A stretch of DNA of 64,000 bases from Adineta vaga (lineage: Eukaryota > Animalia > Rotifera), in the NCBI GenBank assembly GCA_021613535.1, contig CP075492.1, forward strand, positions 5,146,001 to 5,210,000, written 5' to 3'. Positions 49,098-56,924 of the stretch are shown piece by piece (the first letter of the stretch is position 1; each line of letters begins with the position of its first letter). The translations under genes were made by a program, and so were the position numbers. The notes beneath the pieces were generated by a model. The model worked only from the letters and a program-made list of their open reading frames with translations, ran no database searches and was not told the origin of the DNA.

Positions 49098-51002
49098 TTA
49101 TAGATATTGTAGAGAAAATTGTTTTGTGTTATAATTACAGTTGAACGTCAAGGAAAGAAGACGTTGATCCATATTTTGTAGATAGATCATGATTTGCTCG
49201 ATCTTCTTTTTGAATGATTTTTCATCAGAATTATTATATAATCGAATATTGACTGAGACAAGACGTAAAGATGCAATTTTTGTAAAAAGCGAAGCAAGAA
49301 TAGATGATAAATTTCTCACAGATAATCCTATATGAGAGAACGAAAATATTGATAAATTCGGAAGATGAAATATCAAATTATCGATCGATTGAAAATCGCA
49401 TTTATACAAATCAAGTCGTTTAATAGATGGTAATGGGTACCATATATCTTCAAACGGATCAGCGGACGTAATAAGATAATTTAAACGCGGCATTCGATCA
49501 ACTAGCTGAAAAAGAAAACTATGACAAATACAAATAGAAGAGATACATTGTAATTTGTAGCGAAGGATACGAACATGATTAAAAATATTTCGATCGAAAA
49601 TAATTGGTGAAGAATTGATTTGAAGACCATGAATAAACGACAAACTACAATCGACTGAAGTGAGATATGGCATATATCTTCCTAATGATATAAATGAAAT
49701 AGGACAAGCAAGAGTCATATTAGTTAGATAAAGATGACGAATACTAGAAAATGAACAACGAGAACTAAGTTGAGAACACGAAATAAATCCATGAAATTGA
49801 TCGAAACGAAATGGTAAGGAATAAATATGTATATAAAAAGTTTTCGATTCTAATGAATTTATATCTTCAATGTAATAATCAAATTGATCATTGAGAGATG
49901 AAAGAATTCTATTTTTGGTAATTTCATCCTTTATAATAAATGATCCATAGAAATCGAAGCAATCAAATGTATTTTTATATCTAATAATAGTTGACCACAT
50001 ATCTTCATCGAATATGATATGTTCAAATTTTAAAATAACATGTTTGAGAATAATTGAATCAGGACAATAGTGTTCAATAAAAATTTGAATATGATCAAAT
50101 GGTAGATATTCATTCTGTTGTAGATCATTTGATTGTTGTTTCGTACTGACAGACAATTGATTAATTTTACTTAATGGACAACTATTTTCTGTCGGTAGTA
50201 ACTTAAAATGATCTAATTCTTTGTTGTTTATCTGATAAGAAGATTGAAAAAAATTAGCAAAAGTAATTGATAAATGTTGAATATTAGGTGTTCGTTTGAT
50301 AATTTCTAATAGTTGAATAATTGAACAAACTGTTATATTTAAATCAATTAGATTCATATGAAAAGCATCTTTATTGAGTAAAATATTTGTCGAAAATCGA
50401 ATAATCGATTGTGGTATAGATAGTTTTTCATTCGAATAATATTTATCATCATCATCATCAAATTGAAGAACCAGATTTTTCAAGTTCATATGAGCTACAA
50501 GATTCATCCAATCACTAATGTTGATAAGATGAAGTGAATGAAGTTGAGCAAATCGATTGTTAACCTGACGAATGCTCTGTTGCTGTTGAGATAATTTTGT
50601 TGTTTTTCTTGTACAAGAGAAAAACTTCGATGTAATAGAAGAAAATGAAGGTTTTTGACTATAATTAGATGAAATTCCATGTTTTGGATTATTAGAATTC
50701 CTTATTAAATGAATATAATGTTGATCAACTTTCAACATTTGAATCGATTGACAAATCCATTCGAATTGTTGATGATCTCCACACCATCCATTAGTAAGAT
50801 CGATACTTTTGAAATAAAATCGAACAAGATTATCGAATCGAAAATTTAATTGTATAAATGTTCCAAGAATATCATTGATAGTCAAGTAATCAAAAATACA
50901 ATAAATCACTTCGTTTGGAAGTATAATGAATGAAGTGTGTGCTGTTGACATATATGATCTAGAGATTAGAATAAACTTTGAACATAATGATGATTTCATC
51001 AC
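49098..51002 (-). CDS. F-box + degenerate LRR-like protein, intronless
   Basis: LPNEVIYCIFDYL..DIL..F..LN.RF F-box signature, HIYSLPF motif, Leu-rich repeats. Confidence 0.8.
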   Translation of the reverse strand: MMKSSLCSKFILISRSYMSTAHTSFIILPNEVIYCIFDYLTINDILGTFIQLNFRFDNLVRFYFKSIDLTNGWCGDHQQFEWICQSIQMLKVDQHYIHLIRNSNNPKHGISSNYSQKPSFSSITSKFFSCTRKTTKLSQQQQSIRQVNNRFAQLHSLHLINISDWMNLVAHMNLKNLVLQFDDDDDKYYSNEKLSIPQSIIRFSTNILLNKDAFHMNLIDLNITVCSIIQLLEIIKRTPNIQHLSITFANFFQSSYQINNKELDHFKLLPTENSCPLSKINQLSVSTKQQSNDLQQNEYLPFDHIQIFIEHYCPDSIILKHVILKFEHIIFDEDMWSTIIRYKNTFDCFDFYGSFIIKDEITKNRILSSLNDQFDYYIEDINSLESKTFYIHIYSLPFRFDQFHGFISCSQLSSRCSFSSIRHLYLTNMTLACPISFISLGRYMPYLTSVDCSLSFIHGLQINSSPIIFDRNIFNHVRILRYKLQCISSICICHSFLFQLVDRMPRLNYLITSADPFEDIWYPLPSIKRLDLYKCDFQSIDNLIFHLPNLSIFSFSHIGLSVRNLSSILASLFTKIASLRLVSVNIRLYNNSDEKSFKKKIEQIMIYLQNMDQRLLSLTFNCNYNTKQFSLQYL

Positions 51003-51199
51003 TCACAGTCTCACACATAATAATTTTACGTCTCGATGGAAAACTCTCTGGAATTGAACAAAATAATATACGAATCTCTTTTCAATGTCGAAGGTGTCGC
51101 CCGTATGCGTGATTACTTGAAAAGAATGATGCAGTGAGGGTTGTGCTTGACGAGGTTAGTATCTTACTCCTAAAATTCTCTCACTTCCGTGTAAGACAA

Positions 51200-51432
51200 T
51201 CAGACCAGTGTGAAAACGTAATAATAGATAGATTCACTAAAGATCGATCAAATGAATTAATCGAAATTGGATTAAATTTCAATCAGCTCCCGTCTGCTTT
51301 CAACTTCTTCCTGTACATACGAAACTGTCATTTATAGTTTGGTGACCGTAGCTATTACAGGGACTGAATCCATAACGAACAAACAGACAAACATTCTTCC
51401 TTACATATGTAGCATATGTAGAAGATAGATAT
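51200..51432 (+). mobile_element. 3' end of a non-autonomous Helitron/HINE-like element
   Basis: Ends with acgaacaaacagacaaacattcttcc...atagat, resembling the ACAG/ACAA microsatellite tail of Lep1/DINE-1-like elements. Confidence 0.4.
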
Positions 51433-51781
51433 ATAACTACCATGATAAAACAAAATGTATTAAAGCAATGCTTTCTTTTTCTTAAATTTCCATTTCATAA
51501 AAACTGTTCCTGTATGATGCTGTTCAAGCAAATATGGAATTATAGTTGTATACAATTAATGTACTCTAATTTTAGCATATTTTCAATTCGGAGAAAATCG
51601 ATAAAATCAAATTCTCTTATGTTGATTTTAGAACAAAATAGTGAATATTTCTCTAATAGTAAACGGATGATGCCTTTCCAGATAAATTATTTTTATTTCT
51701 TTATAAACTAAAGAAAAATTAATTTGAAAAGACTTTCAAAAGCAGTTTTTAAGCAGTTTCATGTTCATGAATTGAATGCGC

Positions 51782-54700
51782 TTAGTATTCACGATTTGTT
51801 CGTGGAATGATATTTAAACTGTAATCTCTTATTTCGGCATAATTGGTATGACCACACTTAGTCTCATATTCACTACTGGGCTTGACAATGATGCGCATAT
51901 GATGTACTTCATTGCCTCGATAATGAGCATTTCCACTGGGTGGTGTATGAATTTCATAATCATAAAGGCCCGATGGAATTGAGCTACGTAATGGCCAACG
52001 ATTTGGAGTAACGGATTCATTTTCTTGATATGTGTTGTCATTGTTTTGATCAATTAAAATGTTGACATCTTGCATCAAGTTGCAGTCACTTCGCAATGGT
52101 CCTCTGCTAGATATCATTTCACAGTCTAGCTGGATACGAATACGATAATTTGTATTTTCCAAGAGAGTAACTGCCATATGATGGCGATTCTGATATTTGC
52201 TTATGATAGTATTGTTCGGAGTATTATCGCGAATTTCAGTTCCTTGTTCTCCAGCCATGATGACCAGTACAACTCGACCATGACTCTGAGTACATACGCG
52301 ATCACTTAATTGCAAGTAAGGACCACCGAGTTCACCTACGATAGAGAATCATTAGCAAATATATTAACTCTTATCTAAACGCATAATTACTTGATTGCAC
52401 AGTATGTGAAACAACAGTGACTGTATAGTAACGTGCTCTTCGTAATCATTTATATTGCATTTTTTACGATAGCCCTCGTTTAATGTGACAACCAGTTTCA
52501 TACTATGAGGGCCACTTTTGATCTTCCTACCATCTATTACCGGCACCACAATTTGTAAGTCGTATACCCCTTGGGGTAAATAACTTGTTAGTGGCCATCT
52601 ATAAGACGTCGCACTTTCCGATTCATCATAGCGACCATTATCATCAAGGTCTATCCAAGCACTGACCTCATGAGGTAGATGACAATTGTTTTCTACTGAA
52701 TTTCGTTGATGGCCAATTCATTCAAATTGCAAACGTAATAAATAGGTAATATCCTCACGTAACATAATGGACAAATGTTGTTGATTTTCCGCGCTTGTAC
52801 CTAATAATGCATTAGTTGTTGGATCGTCGCGTATTTGTGTGCGATGTTCCCCGCCCATAACTACAAGTATAATTTTGCCGACTTGTGGCGTACATGTGAT
52901 GTTATCATATGCCGCGTATGTTGCTTCAAGATTGTTTGGTGCTAGAATAGATATGAACAATGTATTAAGACATAATGCAAAGTTAAAAAAAATAAGAATA
53001 CGAATAAAAGTATGAATAAAGTCAATAGTTTCACTCAAATTCACTTATTTTCTTATATTCAAGTTTTCGTTAAATACGTATGTGAATATAAAGCGATAAG
53101 AGAAAGAATAACAAAAGTGGGAAAATATTACAATTCTTATCTTTTTAAAGCCGAATACCCTCAAGATATAAAACAAAAACAAATACGTACGTATAAAACT
53201 TGTCTTCGAAATGATGTTCACATAATAATTTCGTTCTTCCGTATAATCACTCTTGCCGCATATACGTCGATAATGGTCGCTTGGCGCAACTACAATGCGC
53301 ATACGATGTTGACGAGATGTGACATAGCGATCATCCAAATACGGTATATGCACTTGGAGATCATAAATGCCGTCGGGCAGGTAGCTAGTAACCGGCCATC
53401 GGTGCGGCGCACCGATTTCAGCCGAATCATAGCGTCCATCATCGTTTAAGTCTAGGAAGACGTTGACATCTTGTGCCAAGTTACACCCTGTTTCAGTTAA
53501 TTCCGTCTTCAGCTGAGACGGACAATCTAACTGTATACGTAATAGATAGATTGTATGTTCGTAAAGAGTCACAGCTAAATGGTGTTGGTTTCGATGATCG
53601 TTTGTCAAAGTATTTCTAGCTAGATCATCTCTAATTTCGGTGCCCTTTTCACCGGCCATCAAAACCAGATTCACCTTTCTGAATTCGACCGAGCACAGTG
53701 GGTTTCTGTAGATATAAGGAATTGTCACTGGAGCTACTACAATGAAAAGTGAGAATCATTTTTTCCCTTCTTAAATTTGTACTATAAAGATATACTTACC
53801 GATGTGTCTAGCTTTTCGAACGATGTTCACCGAATAGTCCCTCTGTTCCTTGTAATCCATGGCACCACATTGAGTTTGGTATTCATGACTGGGTGATAAA
53901 GTAATTATCATTTTATGTTGACCCACTCTTGTATTTATATCATCTATTATGGGTATATAGACGTCTAATTCATATGTACCAGTGGATGTGCCATCAGTTG
54001 GCCAAGATCGACGTAGAAGTCGACCTTTTCCATCATCGTAACCATTGTCGTTGTAATCAATCCATACATGTACACTTAACGAGTTACTGCAAGGGCTATC
54101 GGATAAATGTTCACCCAAATGTCCAACACAGTCTAACTGAACATTTAGTTTATGACTAGAGTCTTCGAATACCGTCAAGATGAAAGCTCGTCGATAATGA
54201 CCATTATCATTATACGTTCGAATGTCATCTTGAACATCTGATCCATGATCACCGTTCGTTTGAACGAGACCAATTCTATTCAAACACAGAGCACAATGCC
54301 CTTTTTTTGATGTCATATATGGATCATTTTGATATGTCGAATCTAAAATGGATATGAAATATCAATTTTCATATTTATAACAAGATTCGACTTCGTTTTA
54401 ATTAGATATACTCACAATGTCGTGTTCTTTCCGGTACAGGCGCCCATGCTGGTGCTTCTACTGGTGTCTCTATTGGTACTTCGACTAGTACTTCGGCTGA
54501 TACTTCGACTGGTACTGTTGTTGTAGTAGTTCGTCTTCGTCTTGGTCGTTGTGTTGGTGCAGATGAGACGATAGGTTCTTCTCGGTAATCTGAATAAATG
54601 AGACGTATTTCAGTAAATTTAAGATTCACAATCTTACCATCAATACTTTCAACATTACATAATTTGATATTAATATCATTCGAATCATCGTCATTTAGTT

Positions 54701-55472
54701 GAACTGGAAGGGCAAAAGTAGACAAACGGTGAAACATCGTACGTAACTGTTTTGAAATGCGACTCTTGCAAGTCGTATCTTCTCGAGAGGTACATTGTCG
54801 TGCATATGCAGGAATAATACTTAGCTCAAGTGCATTTCCAGAGAGAGCATCTTCACAACTGGTTCTAAATTAAAAAAGTGAAAAGTTATTTACGCAATAA
54901 ATTTCGTAATACGATACCCTTTCGATTCATATTCGTTACGAAATGAACCACTAATGACACGAATTGATTTTCCATTGAATTTACTCGTTAACTAGAAGAG
55001 AAGAAAAAACAAAATAACATGAGTAAATCATATATAAGATATCAAACTTCGTCCGTAATAGCATTAAGATTTTTTATATTGAAGGGTTGATTATCATCGT
55101 TTAACGTAAGATCTGTCGTGAATATTATTTTGAATAGCATCTCTTCCATATCTAGATTTTAATTTTCCACATTGTTAATTTCAAAAATATATGCATATGA
55201 ACACTCTTTTTTTTCCGTAGGACTGCTTGATTTCTGTACATTGGGTGCCAAATGAAAAATTGCAAAGGCAGCCGCTAGAGAGATAAAAGCTAGCAGAAAA
55301 CAACCTGCGCTCGCACGTATCCATGTTAATTTCCACACACTTCAAATTATAAGAATAAATAAACGATTGAAGATCTGTATTTCGTCTTTACTTACCGACG
55401 TCCATTTCGCTTGCGCATGTTCACGCTTTGATACTCATCATCGACCATTGCGTCTAGTTCCATTTGATCCAT
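51782..55472 (-). CDS. Type II membrane protein with four tandem GEVED-like domains (third exon disrupted)
   Basis: ATG 55472, TM (GCFLLAFISLAAAFAIF), Thr/Pro stalk, and four ~180-aa repeats with (W/F/L)xDxNxDG, GxY(D/E)L, H.MRI and E.RDY.VNI motifs. Exons 54342-53800, 53736-53191, 52941-52391, 52335-51782. Confidence 0.75.
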
Positions 55473-56924
55473 CTGAACTAAACTATTCTAGTCTATAATG
55501 ATACACAGACAATAATTCAACTAATTCCGATAGTCACAGGTCTAAACATGATGCACAAGAAGAAAAAAAAATCCTTCATAGATAGCTACTACAATATGAA
55601 TGCAATCAAACTAAACACGATGGTTCTTCCACATTATAGATGATCTCATAGTACAAAAGAAATGACATAGCAGACTTTACAAATGAAGCACTTATATACG
55701 AAATTGAAGGTCAAGTAAAAAATAAAGTACTAAAAGTGGTTTCTTTTTTCAAAACATAATTGAATACACAATCTTAAGTGTCTTGTATGTGCTCAAGTTT
55801 CTATTTGCAAGGTTTTTTCCCTTTTCAATAAGGAGAACAATGTTATCTATTAAAGCTATCTATCGCAATACTCAACCCAATTGAACGAATTGCATTGCGT
55901 TTTGAAAATATCCAGAGGGTTTTTCTTTTTGATAACGTATGCATCGCAAAGCGTTTCTACACAACAATTTTCCCATGTGAAATTGTTCTTCTCATAAACG
56001 CGTTTGAGAGTTACATGGGAAGATATGCTTGTGTTGATATAATGAATTCTTTTCTTTAGAGATTTTCTCTCTTCCCCGAAGACTTTCGGCAATATGCCTT
56101 ATGAACATTCATCAATTGGAAAAAGTCTTATGGAAGAACAGCGGGTAAGGCTTTTTACAGTATCTTTATAAAGATGGGTGTTCTGAGGTGGGCAAAGTTT
56201 TGCCACTTGTGTGTCAAGATTCTAGTTAGTTTTGAGTTTAATTGCTGATTCAAATAAACTCTAATAACAATACATTGTTAAATAATAACACTATCATCTT
56301 TGCCAAGTTCACTAGTTTATTATACGCTTTATTTTCCTCTATTATAATATTTGTTCCTACATATTCTTCAAAATGCATGGCAGAGATATACATCGCGATT
56401 GAGAATGTACCGCTGTTGCACCGCGACGGTAATCAAGAAAAAGCTACCACTGCCGCGCCGCCATGGACATCTCTGATGAATGGTCAACACGCAAACGCAC
56501 AAAATTCCTTCTAGAAAAAAATATTGTAAAGTACATGGGTAATAAACGACCAGTTATTCGTAATCGTTAAGTTTGATGTTTGCACACCTGTCTAGCATCT
56601 GGAAGAAAAAAAAGCCTTTCTGATTCGATTCTCATTTTTATCTACATGATCATATTAATATTCTTTGATGATAAGGGTTAAACTGATGGTCGCTTATCTT
56701 CAAAAGCAGGTTTTGTAAACTATCGGTGATTCGGAGAGAGAAAGGGTGAATGTAGGTGAACTATACGAGAATGGATGCAATACGCTTACTCGCTCAGTGA
56801 TCTTTGATACGCGTATTTGCGTTTTACTTTATTTTTTTACAGGAAAATCAATACTAAATGGTAAAAATGAATAAAATTTTACCGAACTCATGCGCATAAT
56901 TGTAAGATTTTAAATCTATATTAC

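Follow-up and report, generated by a model that had tools for sequence, protein, structure and literature searches.

Locus and gene model

We analysed a 64,000-nt stretch of the bdelloid rotifer Adineta vaga (C3:5146001–5210000 of a 100.8-Mb assembly in six contigs; hereafter the window), in which a ten-exon gene occupies the minus strand from 55472 to 51782. Mapped exon by exon, it corresponds to the published gene I4U23_012290 (protein P0170, 881 aa), which is annotated as "hypothetical protein" and was thus already on record, although without a function. We consider it likely that this gene is one of four A. vaga paralogues in a bdelloid family of type II single-pass surface proteins built on GEVED modules of bacterial derivation. 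The gene is a genuine gene of the host chromosome and not contamination; it sits on a 20.35-Mb contig, has spliceosomal introns and rotifer neighbours, and belongs to a set of four paralogous loci.

Open reading frame (ORF) listing and three-frame translation of the window recovered the four minus-strand repeats of ∼180 aa (R1–R4) described in an initial annotation made from the sequence. The gene model (Table 1) was then derived by aligning each paralogue's published protein with its own locus, resolving each GT..AG junction and checking the window arithmetically, with P0170, P0007, P0166 and P0001 as the published proteins for comparison. The repeat exons of the initial annotation (543, 546 and 551 nt plus a terminal exon) agree exactly with this model, and all repeat-exon borders are GT..AG. 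Its statement that every junction is phase 1 stands for R1 and R2, both of class 1-1, but a 551-nt R3 exon cannot be 1-1, and the R3/R4 junction comes out as phase 1 only if each repeat is read in its own frame.

Table 1. Exons and one intron of the four-repeat gene (window positions; phases as entering to leaving)
Feature	Position	Strand	Description
Exon 1	55396..55472	-	77 nt, phase out 2; cytosolic tail of acidic and basic residues, with the start codon: MDQMELDAMVDDEYQSVNMRKRNGR; agrees with P0170 start
Exon 2	55203..55339	-	137 nt, phase 2 to 1; predicted transmembrane helix AGCFLLAFISLAAAFAIFHLA after RRVWKLTWIR
Exon 3	55048..55151	-	104 nt, phase 1 to 0; start of juxtamembrane module (MEEMLFKIIFTTDLTLNDDNQPFNIKNLNAITDE); absent from P0170
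Exon 4	54918..54991	-	74 nt, phase 0 to 2; juxtamembrane module continues
Exon 5	54638..54864	-	227 nt, phase 2 to 1; juxtamembrane Cys module TSCEDALSGN...CTSREDTTCK...KLCNVESID
Exon 6	54416..54589	-	174 nt, phase 1-1; Pro/Thr/Glu/Val-rich stalk
R1 exon	53800..54342	-	543 nt, phase 1-1; Pfam GEVED 25.3 bits
R2 exon	53191..53736	-	546 nt, phase 1-1; Pfam GEVED 25.1 bits
R3 exon	52391..52941	-	551 nt (552 expected), broken in the assembly; Pfam GEVED 22.0 bits
Intron R3/R4	52336..52390	-	55 nt, GT..AG
R4 exon	51782..52335	-	554 nt including TAA, terminal; Pfam GEVED 29.9 bits

The 5' part of the gene leans on comparison with the paralogues. The exon 2 donor (GTTCAT) was placed by homology to their 140-nt exon and 51-nt intron, P0170 having a shorter exon, and exon 3 has a counterpart of 104–110 nt in all three paralogues and is conserved in P0007, P0166 and P0002, a relative from Adineta steineri. 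A candidate exon 4 donor after …KFIA (gtaaat) was dropped, the paralogues and P0170 favouring the one after …ESKG (gtatcg). The transmembrane (TM) anchor and Thr/Pro stalk proposed upstream of the repeats are both present, as a helix following a basic stretch and as a Pro/Thr/Glu/Val-rich exon. Given positive charges on the inner side, the helix is predicted to be type II, with its N terminus in the cytosol; this helix with its basic N-terminal flank, the Cys pairs and the N-x-T sites suggest that the repeats are extracellular and located at the surface.

Two of the published models are faulty. In P0170 exon 3 is missing, a portion of R2 is translated in a different frame and mini-introns are cut around the lesions in R3 described below; P0007 (I4U23_012660) has R1 and R2 truncated and R4 omitted, yet the genome has four open repeats there.

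Homology of the repeats to bacterial GEVED units

GEVED, whose definition goes back to the NR3 region of CshA, a fibrillar adhesin of streptococci, is a bacterial surface and adhesin domain, associated with stalks and tips across bacterial phyla; in extracellular polypeptides with a wide distribution among those phyla, GEVED-like domains occur alongside CshA_NR2-like ones, and the C-terminal GEVED motif is conserved in >88% of the sequences analysed (PMC10952558). The same source agrees with the view in the initial annotation that GEVED is typical of bacterial surface proteins. When the exon translations were compared with the Pfam GEVED hidden Markov model (PF20009; curated gathering cut-off 24.4 bits), three of the four repeats scored above the cut-off (R1, R2 and R4) and R3 below it. 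The R3 match is shortened by a frameshift, and R3 of the paralogue at C3:6.24 Mb scores 26.9 bits. The Pfam model spans no more than the ∼80 C-terminal residues of a repeat.

Sixteen A. vaga repeats were combined into a profile (profile A1), which retrieved 2,244 proteins at E ≤ 1e-3 from 1.84 billion representative sequences. Next after the rotifer proteins came giant proteins of 2,000–7,600 aa with up to 28 matched stretches. The best non-rotifer matches (P0040, P0080 and P0095; E 1e-33 to 1e-52) carry six to eight Pfam GEVED domains (E 1e-69 to 1e-108), Big_2 and the Por_Secre_tail sorting domain of the type IX secretion system (T9SS). Recognition is therefore reciprocal: the rotifer-repeat profile retrieves bona fide GEVED proteins, and the GEVED call holds from both sides. 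The neighbourhood of P0080 is bacterial, with housekeeping genes such as those for GrpE and DnaJ, and another match, P0057, is a protein of a Chitinophagia bacterium. As judged by these matches, the closest non-rotifer relatives are giant T9SS-secreted proteins of Bacteroidota.

The similarity extends well beyond the region covered by Pfam. Several bacterial matches cover profile positions 5–169, which is the entire unit of ∼165 aa, at 20%–31% identity. Rotifer and bacterial units have in common GE.GT.I.D and Y.(D/N)R..L.VTL in the N-terminal half, and further WID.N.DG.F, HRMR and C....YGE.RDY.VNI. The repeats of the window share (W/F/L)ID.N(D/N)(D/N)G, G.Y(D/E)L, H(R/K)M(R/K)I and E.R(D/N)Y.(V/L)NI, and the alignment of the profile repeats (alignment A1) contains four conserved Cys (C14, C71, C84 and C160), so that the shared motifs and Cys pairs read from the sequence at the outset can be seen there. 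The outer pair, C14 and C160, is also found in bacterial units, and the C71–C84 loop is a rotifer addition. For the most part, rotifer units have lost the Gly and the acidic fourth residue of GEVED: the corresponding positions read KEQRDY, TEERNY, (EE-RYY) and AEIRDY in the window, with only E..(D/N)Y kept, and GEVRDY and GEARDY in R5 units of the paralogues. Together, these alignments indicate that the four modules are homologous over their full length to the GEVED-containing units of bacterial surface proteins.

Four paralogues and the spread of the module

The three other loci are at C3:6.24 Mb (I4U23_012660), C5:12.94 Mb (I4U23_026095, with five repeats) and C1:12.69 Mb (I4U23_004143, with a nucleoredoxin-type N-terminal part). 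They share with the window gene the exon plan and its phases, the TM helix, the juxtamembrane module, the stalk and the order of repeats: a TM exon of 140 nt is followed by exons of 104–110, 74–83 and 218–227 nt, the stalk, and repeat exons of 540–555 nt in phase 1-1. The arrangement of one repeat per phase 1-1 exon, noted at first in the window, thus holds across the four paralogues, R3 of the window failing only through a 1-nt deletion. Introns between repeats lie at equivalent points, ∼7 residues past the VNI strand and 13–15 residues ahead of the first Cys, and the stalk exon and the small exon before R5 are phase 1-1 as well. The window repeats are 77%–87% identical to those of the C3:6.24 Mb copy. 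The window copy lacks the terminal R5 type, which is the most GEVED-like: among 16 genome-wide Pfam GEVED matches above the cut-off, the highest score (61 bits) belongs to the fifth repeat of the C5 copy.

A six-frame search of the whole genome with our profile and Pfam GEVED placed 17 units in the four loci, located one more, single and decayed, elsewhere, and showed no occurrence of the module in unrelated A. vaga gene architectures. The initial annotation had called the module "shuffle-competent", but in A. vaga it is confined to four paralogous loci and one relic. Duplication inside the gene is shown, and shuffling into other genes is not. Two models that might have suggested such shuffling were set aside: in A. 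steineri P0182, which combines Kelch and GEVED, a second internal TM helix precedes a separate Kelch gene, so that it looks like merged models, and in P0171 (DUF7151 and GEVED) the DUF7151 match is below the cut-off.

The published model of the C1 paralogue (P0001, 1,700 aa; C1:12684600–12692600) has 18 exons and joins two thioredoxin-like regions to the TM helix, stalk and four GEVED exons. The decayed unit lies on the plus strand at C1:14852562–14853120, its N-terminal half in a 69-aa ORF (…INNFILNSELGTQINDLNT) and its C-terminal half reading MRATLAYETMSNPCSTSSIYGETHDYIVNLLP, with stops between the halves. Its YGE..DY ending is closer to the bacterial endings than are those of the window repeats, and the unit could be what is left of the original transfer, or else of a second transfer.

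Taxonomic distribution and phylogeny

A search with P0002 returned 33 proteins, and all the named ones come from Adineta, Rotaria or Didymodactylos; many bdelloid relatives bear the automatic UniProt label "GEVED domain-containing protein". No non-bdelloid eukaryote appeared among the named matches, 30 further look-ups included, most of the 2,244 matches carrying no taxon. Neighbours of the repeats in the protein atlas are Rotifera or Bacteria. Some small unnamed single-unit matches (P0081/P0190, P0076 and P0186) were considered as relatives from bacteria or other eukaryotes and rejected: their contigs carry F-box, 7tm_1 or more GEVED exons, and at 31%–39% GC they are rotifer DNA in metagenomes.

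We inferred an unrooted tree of 56 units (42 rotifer and 14 bacterial) using IQ-TREE with the posterior mean site frequency (PMSF) model. The rotifer and bacterial units form the two sides of one branch, with a support of 100 in the Shimodaira–Hasegawa-like approximate likelihood-ratio test (SH-aLRT), and a 120-unit FastTree gave the same split, with each unnamed full-length unit on the rotifer side. With respect to the bacteria sampled, the tree indicates a single common ancestor for the whole set of rotifer units. Within the rotifer side, units cluster by position across the three genera (R1 97, R2 97, R3 99, R4 94, R5 96), so the array predates the divergence of Adineta, Rotaria and Didymodactylos. 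The idea of a foreign domain multiplied in an animal gains from this the monophyly of the rotifer repeats and positions older than the genera, but the donor and the direction are not shown. Likewise, the phylogeny proposed as a check separates rotifer from bacterial clades, but the rotifer clade stands on a long branch, and in the 56-unit tree we did not find the rotifer units nested in a donor clade.

We infer transfer from bacteria, and its direction, from the taxonomic distribution. That distribution has also to be set against descent without horizontal transfer, in which an ancient eukaryotic or animal module was inherited vertically and was lost or goes unrecognised elsewhere. The un-nested rotifer clade on its long branch, the lack of a taxon for most of the 2,244 matches and the animal-like look of the other parts of the protein would fit such a history. 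Yet among billions of proteins searched the only named eukaryotes are bdelloids, the atlas neighbours are Rotifera or Bacteria, and GEVED-like domains with CshA_NR2-like domains are widespread across bacterial phyla (PMC10952558), and we regard vertical descent as very unlikely.

Fold and juxtamembrane module

Exons were searched one by one. The AlphaFold2 model of R2, based on an alignment of 120 sequences (alignment A2), is an eight-strand beta sandwich with short helices (predicted local distance difference test score 83, predicted template modelling score 0.79). Foldseek against PDB with two models, and VIA-align, returned generic Ig-like/E-set sandwiches only. The structural comparison suggested at the outset thus yielded an all-beta sandwich of this general kind but no specific structural relative: RhoGDI, filamin, macroglobulin and transglutaminase domains were rejected as generic, and so was the best match, endo-beta-N-acetylglucosaminidase HS (Z 9.5, root-mean-square deviation 6.3, discontinuous range). 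A sequence search of PDB with the rotifer profile gave no significant match, the DxNxDG loop reaching dockerin Ca2+ loops at a non-significant E of about 0.9.

Between the TM helix and the stalk, a Cys-containing module of ∼130 aa (55151–54638, exons 3–5) is conserved in the family. In five family members it had no Pfam match at E ≤ 10, SEA (PF01390) included. Among named clusters of the protein atlas, those of SEA-domain proteins come nearest to it (at 0.86), which we treat as no more than a lead, and the module is possibly SEA-like.

A stop codon and a frameshift in the third repeat as assembled

The window copy is the only one of the four A. vaga copies with a stop codon and a frameshift, and both fall in R3. 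An in-frame TGA (52720–52718, minus strand) occupies the position of a conserved Cys (C71 of A1) that is Cys in every other repeat; the C3:6.24 Mb paralogue, whose R3 is intact, has TGT there and reads ...LRLQFECIGHQ.... About 280 nt downstream, one nucleotide is missing between 52436 and 52435 (minus strand), where the paralogue reads ...EETRYYTVTVVS: the window has gag-ca-cgt against gag-aca-cgt, the deleted base being an A on the minus strand, and ...DYEETRYYTVTVVS becomes ...DYEEHVTIQ.... The R3 exon measures 551 rather than 552 nt because of this deletion. Taken at face value, the sequence ends the reading frame in R3 and puts R4 out of frame, with eight stops; the gene has no stops outside the R3 lesions.

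We compared the locus with contigs from public runs X1, X2, X3 and X9, bearing in mind that contigs drop minority variants. Run X3 (2013, same species label) is DNA, since it covers the whole locus unspliced. A 202-nt X3 contig (52688–52889) has a single difference from the window, a plus-strand T>G at 52718 that turns the stop into TGC (Cys) at a depth of 170.5/170.5; it derives from the window locus, since 35 differences would be expected there from the paralogue, whose codon is TGT. At the deletion site, all of the X3 depth (334/334, two contigs) has a T inserted behind 52435. Along the locus, X3 contigs differ from the window by 1%–3%, like an alternative haplotype. The stop and the deletion are either assembly errors or lesions of one haplotype.

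If both lesions are real, the window copy would be a decaying pseudogene or null allele, and we hold this to be quite possible. The product of the locus would then be, at best, a protein that ends after R2 or, with R3 skipped, one with three repeats, which could arise because R2 and R4 are both phase 1, and function would rest with the intact paralogue 1 Mb away. The assembly with the TGA and the 551-nt exon is polished and chromosome-level, both lesions had to be bypassed in the published annotation, the haplotype-like divergence of X3 means that the assembled haplotype may truly differ from the reads, and the only RNA-type contigs from the window locus are of low depth, with none over R1–R3. 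On the other side, no X3 contig supports either lesion, the rest of the gene is free of stops, and the ratio of nonsynonymous to synonymous divergence (dN/dS) from the paralogue is low in each part tested (0.15 for R1, 0.06 for R2, and 0.07 and 0.12 for the first and second halves of R3). As minority variants are dropped from the contigs, the reads are not decisive.

The TGA might instead encode selenocysteine in place of the conserved Cys. It falls exactly on the Cys codon, which is TGT in the paralogue and TGC in other reads. However, an Rfam scan of both strands of 50900–55700 gave no match at E ≤ 1 and hence no selenocysteine insertion sequence (SECIS), the Cys is presumed to take part in a structural disulfide loop in an extracellular module, the frameshift follows downstream, and other reads have TGC. 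We reject this reading and give it next to no credence.

The gene has an uneven similarity to the paralogue (C3:6243.9–6244.7 kb). Identity is 60%–67% in the 5' exons and ∼80% in R1 and R2, rises to 95%–100% in the second half of R3 (52715–52460) and is 87%–94% in R4, and synonymous divergence (dS) falls from 0.8–1.6 to 0.155. The high-identity stretch looks like a gene-conversion tract that would start directly after the TGA codon.

Transcripts

Two independent Logan run assemblies contain contigs of ∼3.06–3.10 kb with an uninterrupted 2,886-nt frame for P0174, a four-repeat homologue of 961 aa that is 39% identical to P0170. The uninterrupted frame points to cDNA, and so to a family that is transcribed and spliced in another bdelloid. 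Within A. vaga, a spliced 578-nt contig of run X2 joins 52391 to 52334/5 with the 55-nt GT..AG intron removed. It differs from the window at 22/251 and 10/325 positions, where 21 and 16 would be expected of the paralogue; it is probably the paralogue's transcript, and supports the homologous R3/R4 junction rather than an mRNA of the window locus. RNA-type contigs of the window locus itself cover parts of R4 (X2, 52084–52253, three differences; X9, 51956–52090, two differences). Junction mapping, which the initial annotation had put forward as a check, therefore gave a divided answer: the homologous R3/R4 splice is seen, probably from the paralogue, but an X1 contig runs unspliced through this intron.

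Proposed history of the family

From the inside outward, the protein would consist of a short cytosolic tail, the TM anchor, the Cys-containing juxtamembrane module, a probably glycosylated Pro/Thr-rich stalk and four beta-sandwich modules of ∼165–180 aa. The modules may be stiffened by two disulfides and by a DxNxDG loop that may bind Ca2+, and the four together would form a putative rod-like ectodomain with an adhesive or recognition role at the surface of the cell. The architecture thus suggests a receptor or adhesin role.

We propose that bdelloids acquired a GEVED unit from bacteria before the split of Adineta, Rotaria and Didymodactylos, that the captured unit came to occupy an exon between phase-1 introns, and that tandem duplication of this exon would have produced an array of four to five modules behind membrane and stalk parts of animal type. 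A more specific form of this scenario is tentative: the bdelloid stem lineage would have taken up a single bacterial adhesin unit in the form of one symmetric phase-1 exon, this exon would have been placed downstream of TM, SEA-like and mucin-like segments of animal type, and its tandem duplication would have given rise to a surface-protein family restricted to bdelloids. We find this plausible without being persuaded of it. Duplication of a single symmetric exon would be simpler than repeated intron gain, because intron phase is identical and intron positions are equivalent in all four paralogues.

An entire multi-GEVED bacterial gene could also have been transferred, with introns gained later at each repeat boundary, which we think unlikely. 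Foreign genes in bdelloids are known to acquire introns. Tandem arrays of 5–10 units already exist in the bacterial relatives, where the units of a given protein are most closely related to one another, so that monophyly of the rotifer units is expected here too; since bacterial within-protein repeats also cluster, rotifer monophyly cannot separate single-unit capture from whole-gene transfer. The latter would, however, require four to five independent intron gains at homologous positions, all in phase 1 and all kept in four paralogues. Moreover, class 1-1 extends to the stalk exon and to the small exon ahead of R5, which is what a locus growing by duplication of symmetric exons would show, and the Big_2 and PKD domains between bacterial units are absent from the rotifer gene.

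Several observations weigh against a bdelloid surface-protein family of bacterial derivation as we describe it. The Pfam scores of the window repeats barely exceed the cut-off, and the GEVED motif is altered to E.R(D/N)Y. The branch connecting rotifer and bacterial units is ∼1.5 changes per site long in an unrooted tree with no donor clade, and the units of one bacterial protein cluster together just as the rotifer units do. Absence from other animals is not established; the searches covered protein collections, and most matches came without a taxon. R3 is interrupted in the assembly, no full-length transcript is demonstrated for the window locus, and the unspliced X1 contig may be DNA or pre-mRNA. 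The similarity of the DxNxDG loop, a candidate Ca2+ site, to the dockerin loop has an E of about 0.9.

Comparison with known systems

Bacterial GEVED proteins such as Streptococcus gordonii CshA (NR3) and the Bacteroidota T9SS proteins resemble the rotifer gene in having tandem arrays on proteins that are extracellular or, in the rotifer, predicted to be so. In contrast to them, the rotifer gene has an animal host and introns, its product is anchored by an N-terminal type II TM helix rather than by a T9SS C-terminal domain or LPXTG, and it lacks the CshA_NR2 partner, has the extra C71–C84 loop and carries the motif E.R(D/N)Y.

Class 1-1 mobile modules are the units of exon shuffling in metazoan extracellular proteins, in Patthy's sense. 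The rotifer repeats are predicted to be alike in that one module occupies one symmetric 1-1 exon in an extracellular, disulfide-bonded, repeated setting; they differ in being found in one gene family of one animal group and in having bacterial relatives. Type II transmembrane serine proteases combine a juxtamembrane SEA module with a mucin-like stalk. The rotifer protein is similar to type II membrane proteins with SEA in its N-in TM helix, its ∼130-aa module near SEA clusters and its Pro/Thr-rich stalk, but has no Pfam SEA match, and its distal domains are GEVED repeats instead of a protease.

Bdelloid rotifers are the animals best known for foreign gene uptake, and most documented cases are whole enzymes. 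A foreign-derived bdelloid gene is therefore of a kind already known, and the variant part is that it would be built on bacterial GEVED adhesin modules: the piece of presumed foreign origin is a structural module for the surface that occupies symmetric exons, has been multiplied and is joined to animal membrane and stalk parts. We found no paper on the rotifer GEVED family, whose orthologues bear only the automatic UniProt label. The family joins two topics usually kept separate, horizontal transfer and the growth of animal extracellular proteins by exon duplication, and GEVED, for which our sequence search of PDB gave no significant match, gains a eukaryotic setting in which binding partners can be sought. 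If the proposed history is true, it would be a natural and datable case of foreign DNA turned into a new class 1-1 extracellular module of animals.

Other features of the locus

Next to the gene, the minus strand at 49098–51002 holds a 634-aa single-exon ORF that matches no Pfam family at E ≤ 0.01. Within the gene, the R2/R3 intron (53190–52942) is 249 nt long, ∼4–5 times the 48–73 nt of the other introns, and the corresponding intron measures 422 nt in the paralogue's model P0007, though that model truncates R2.

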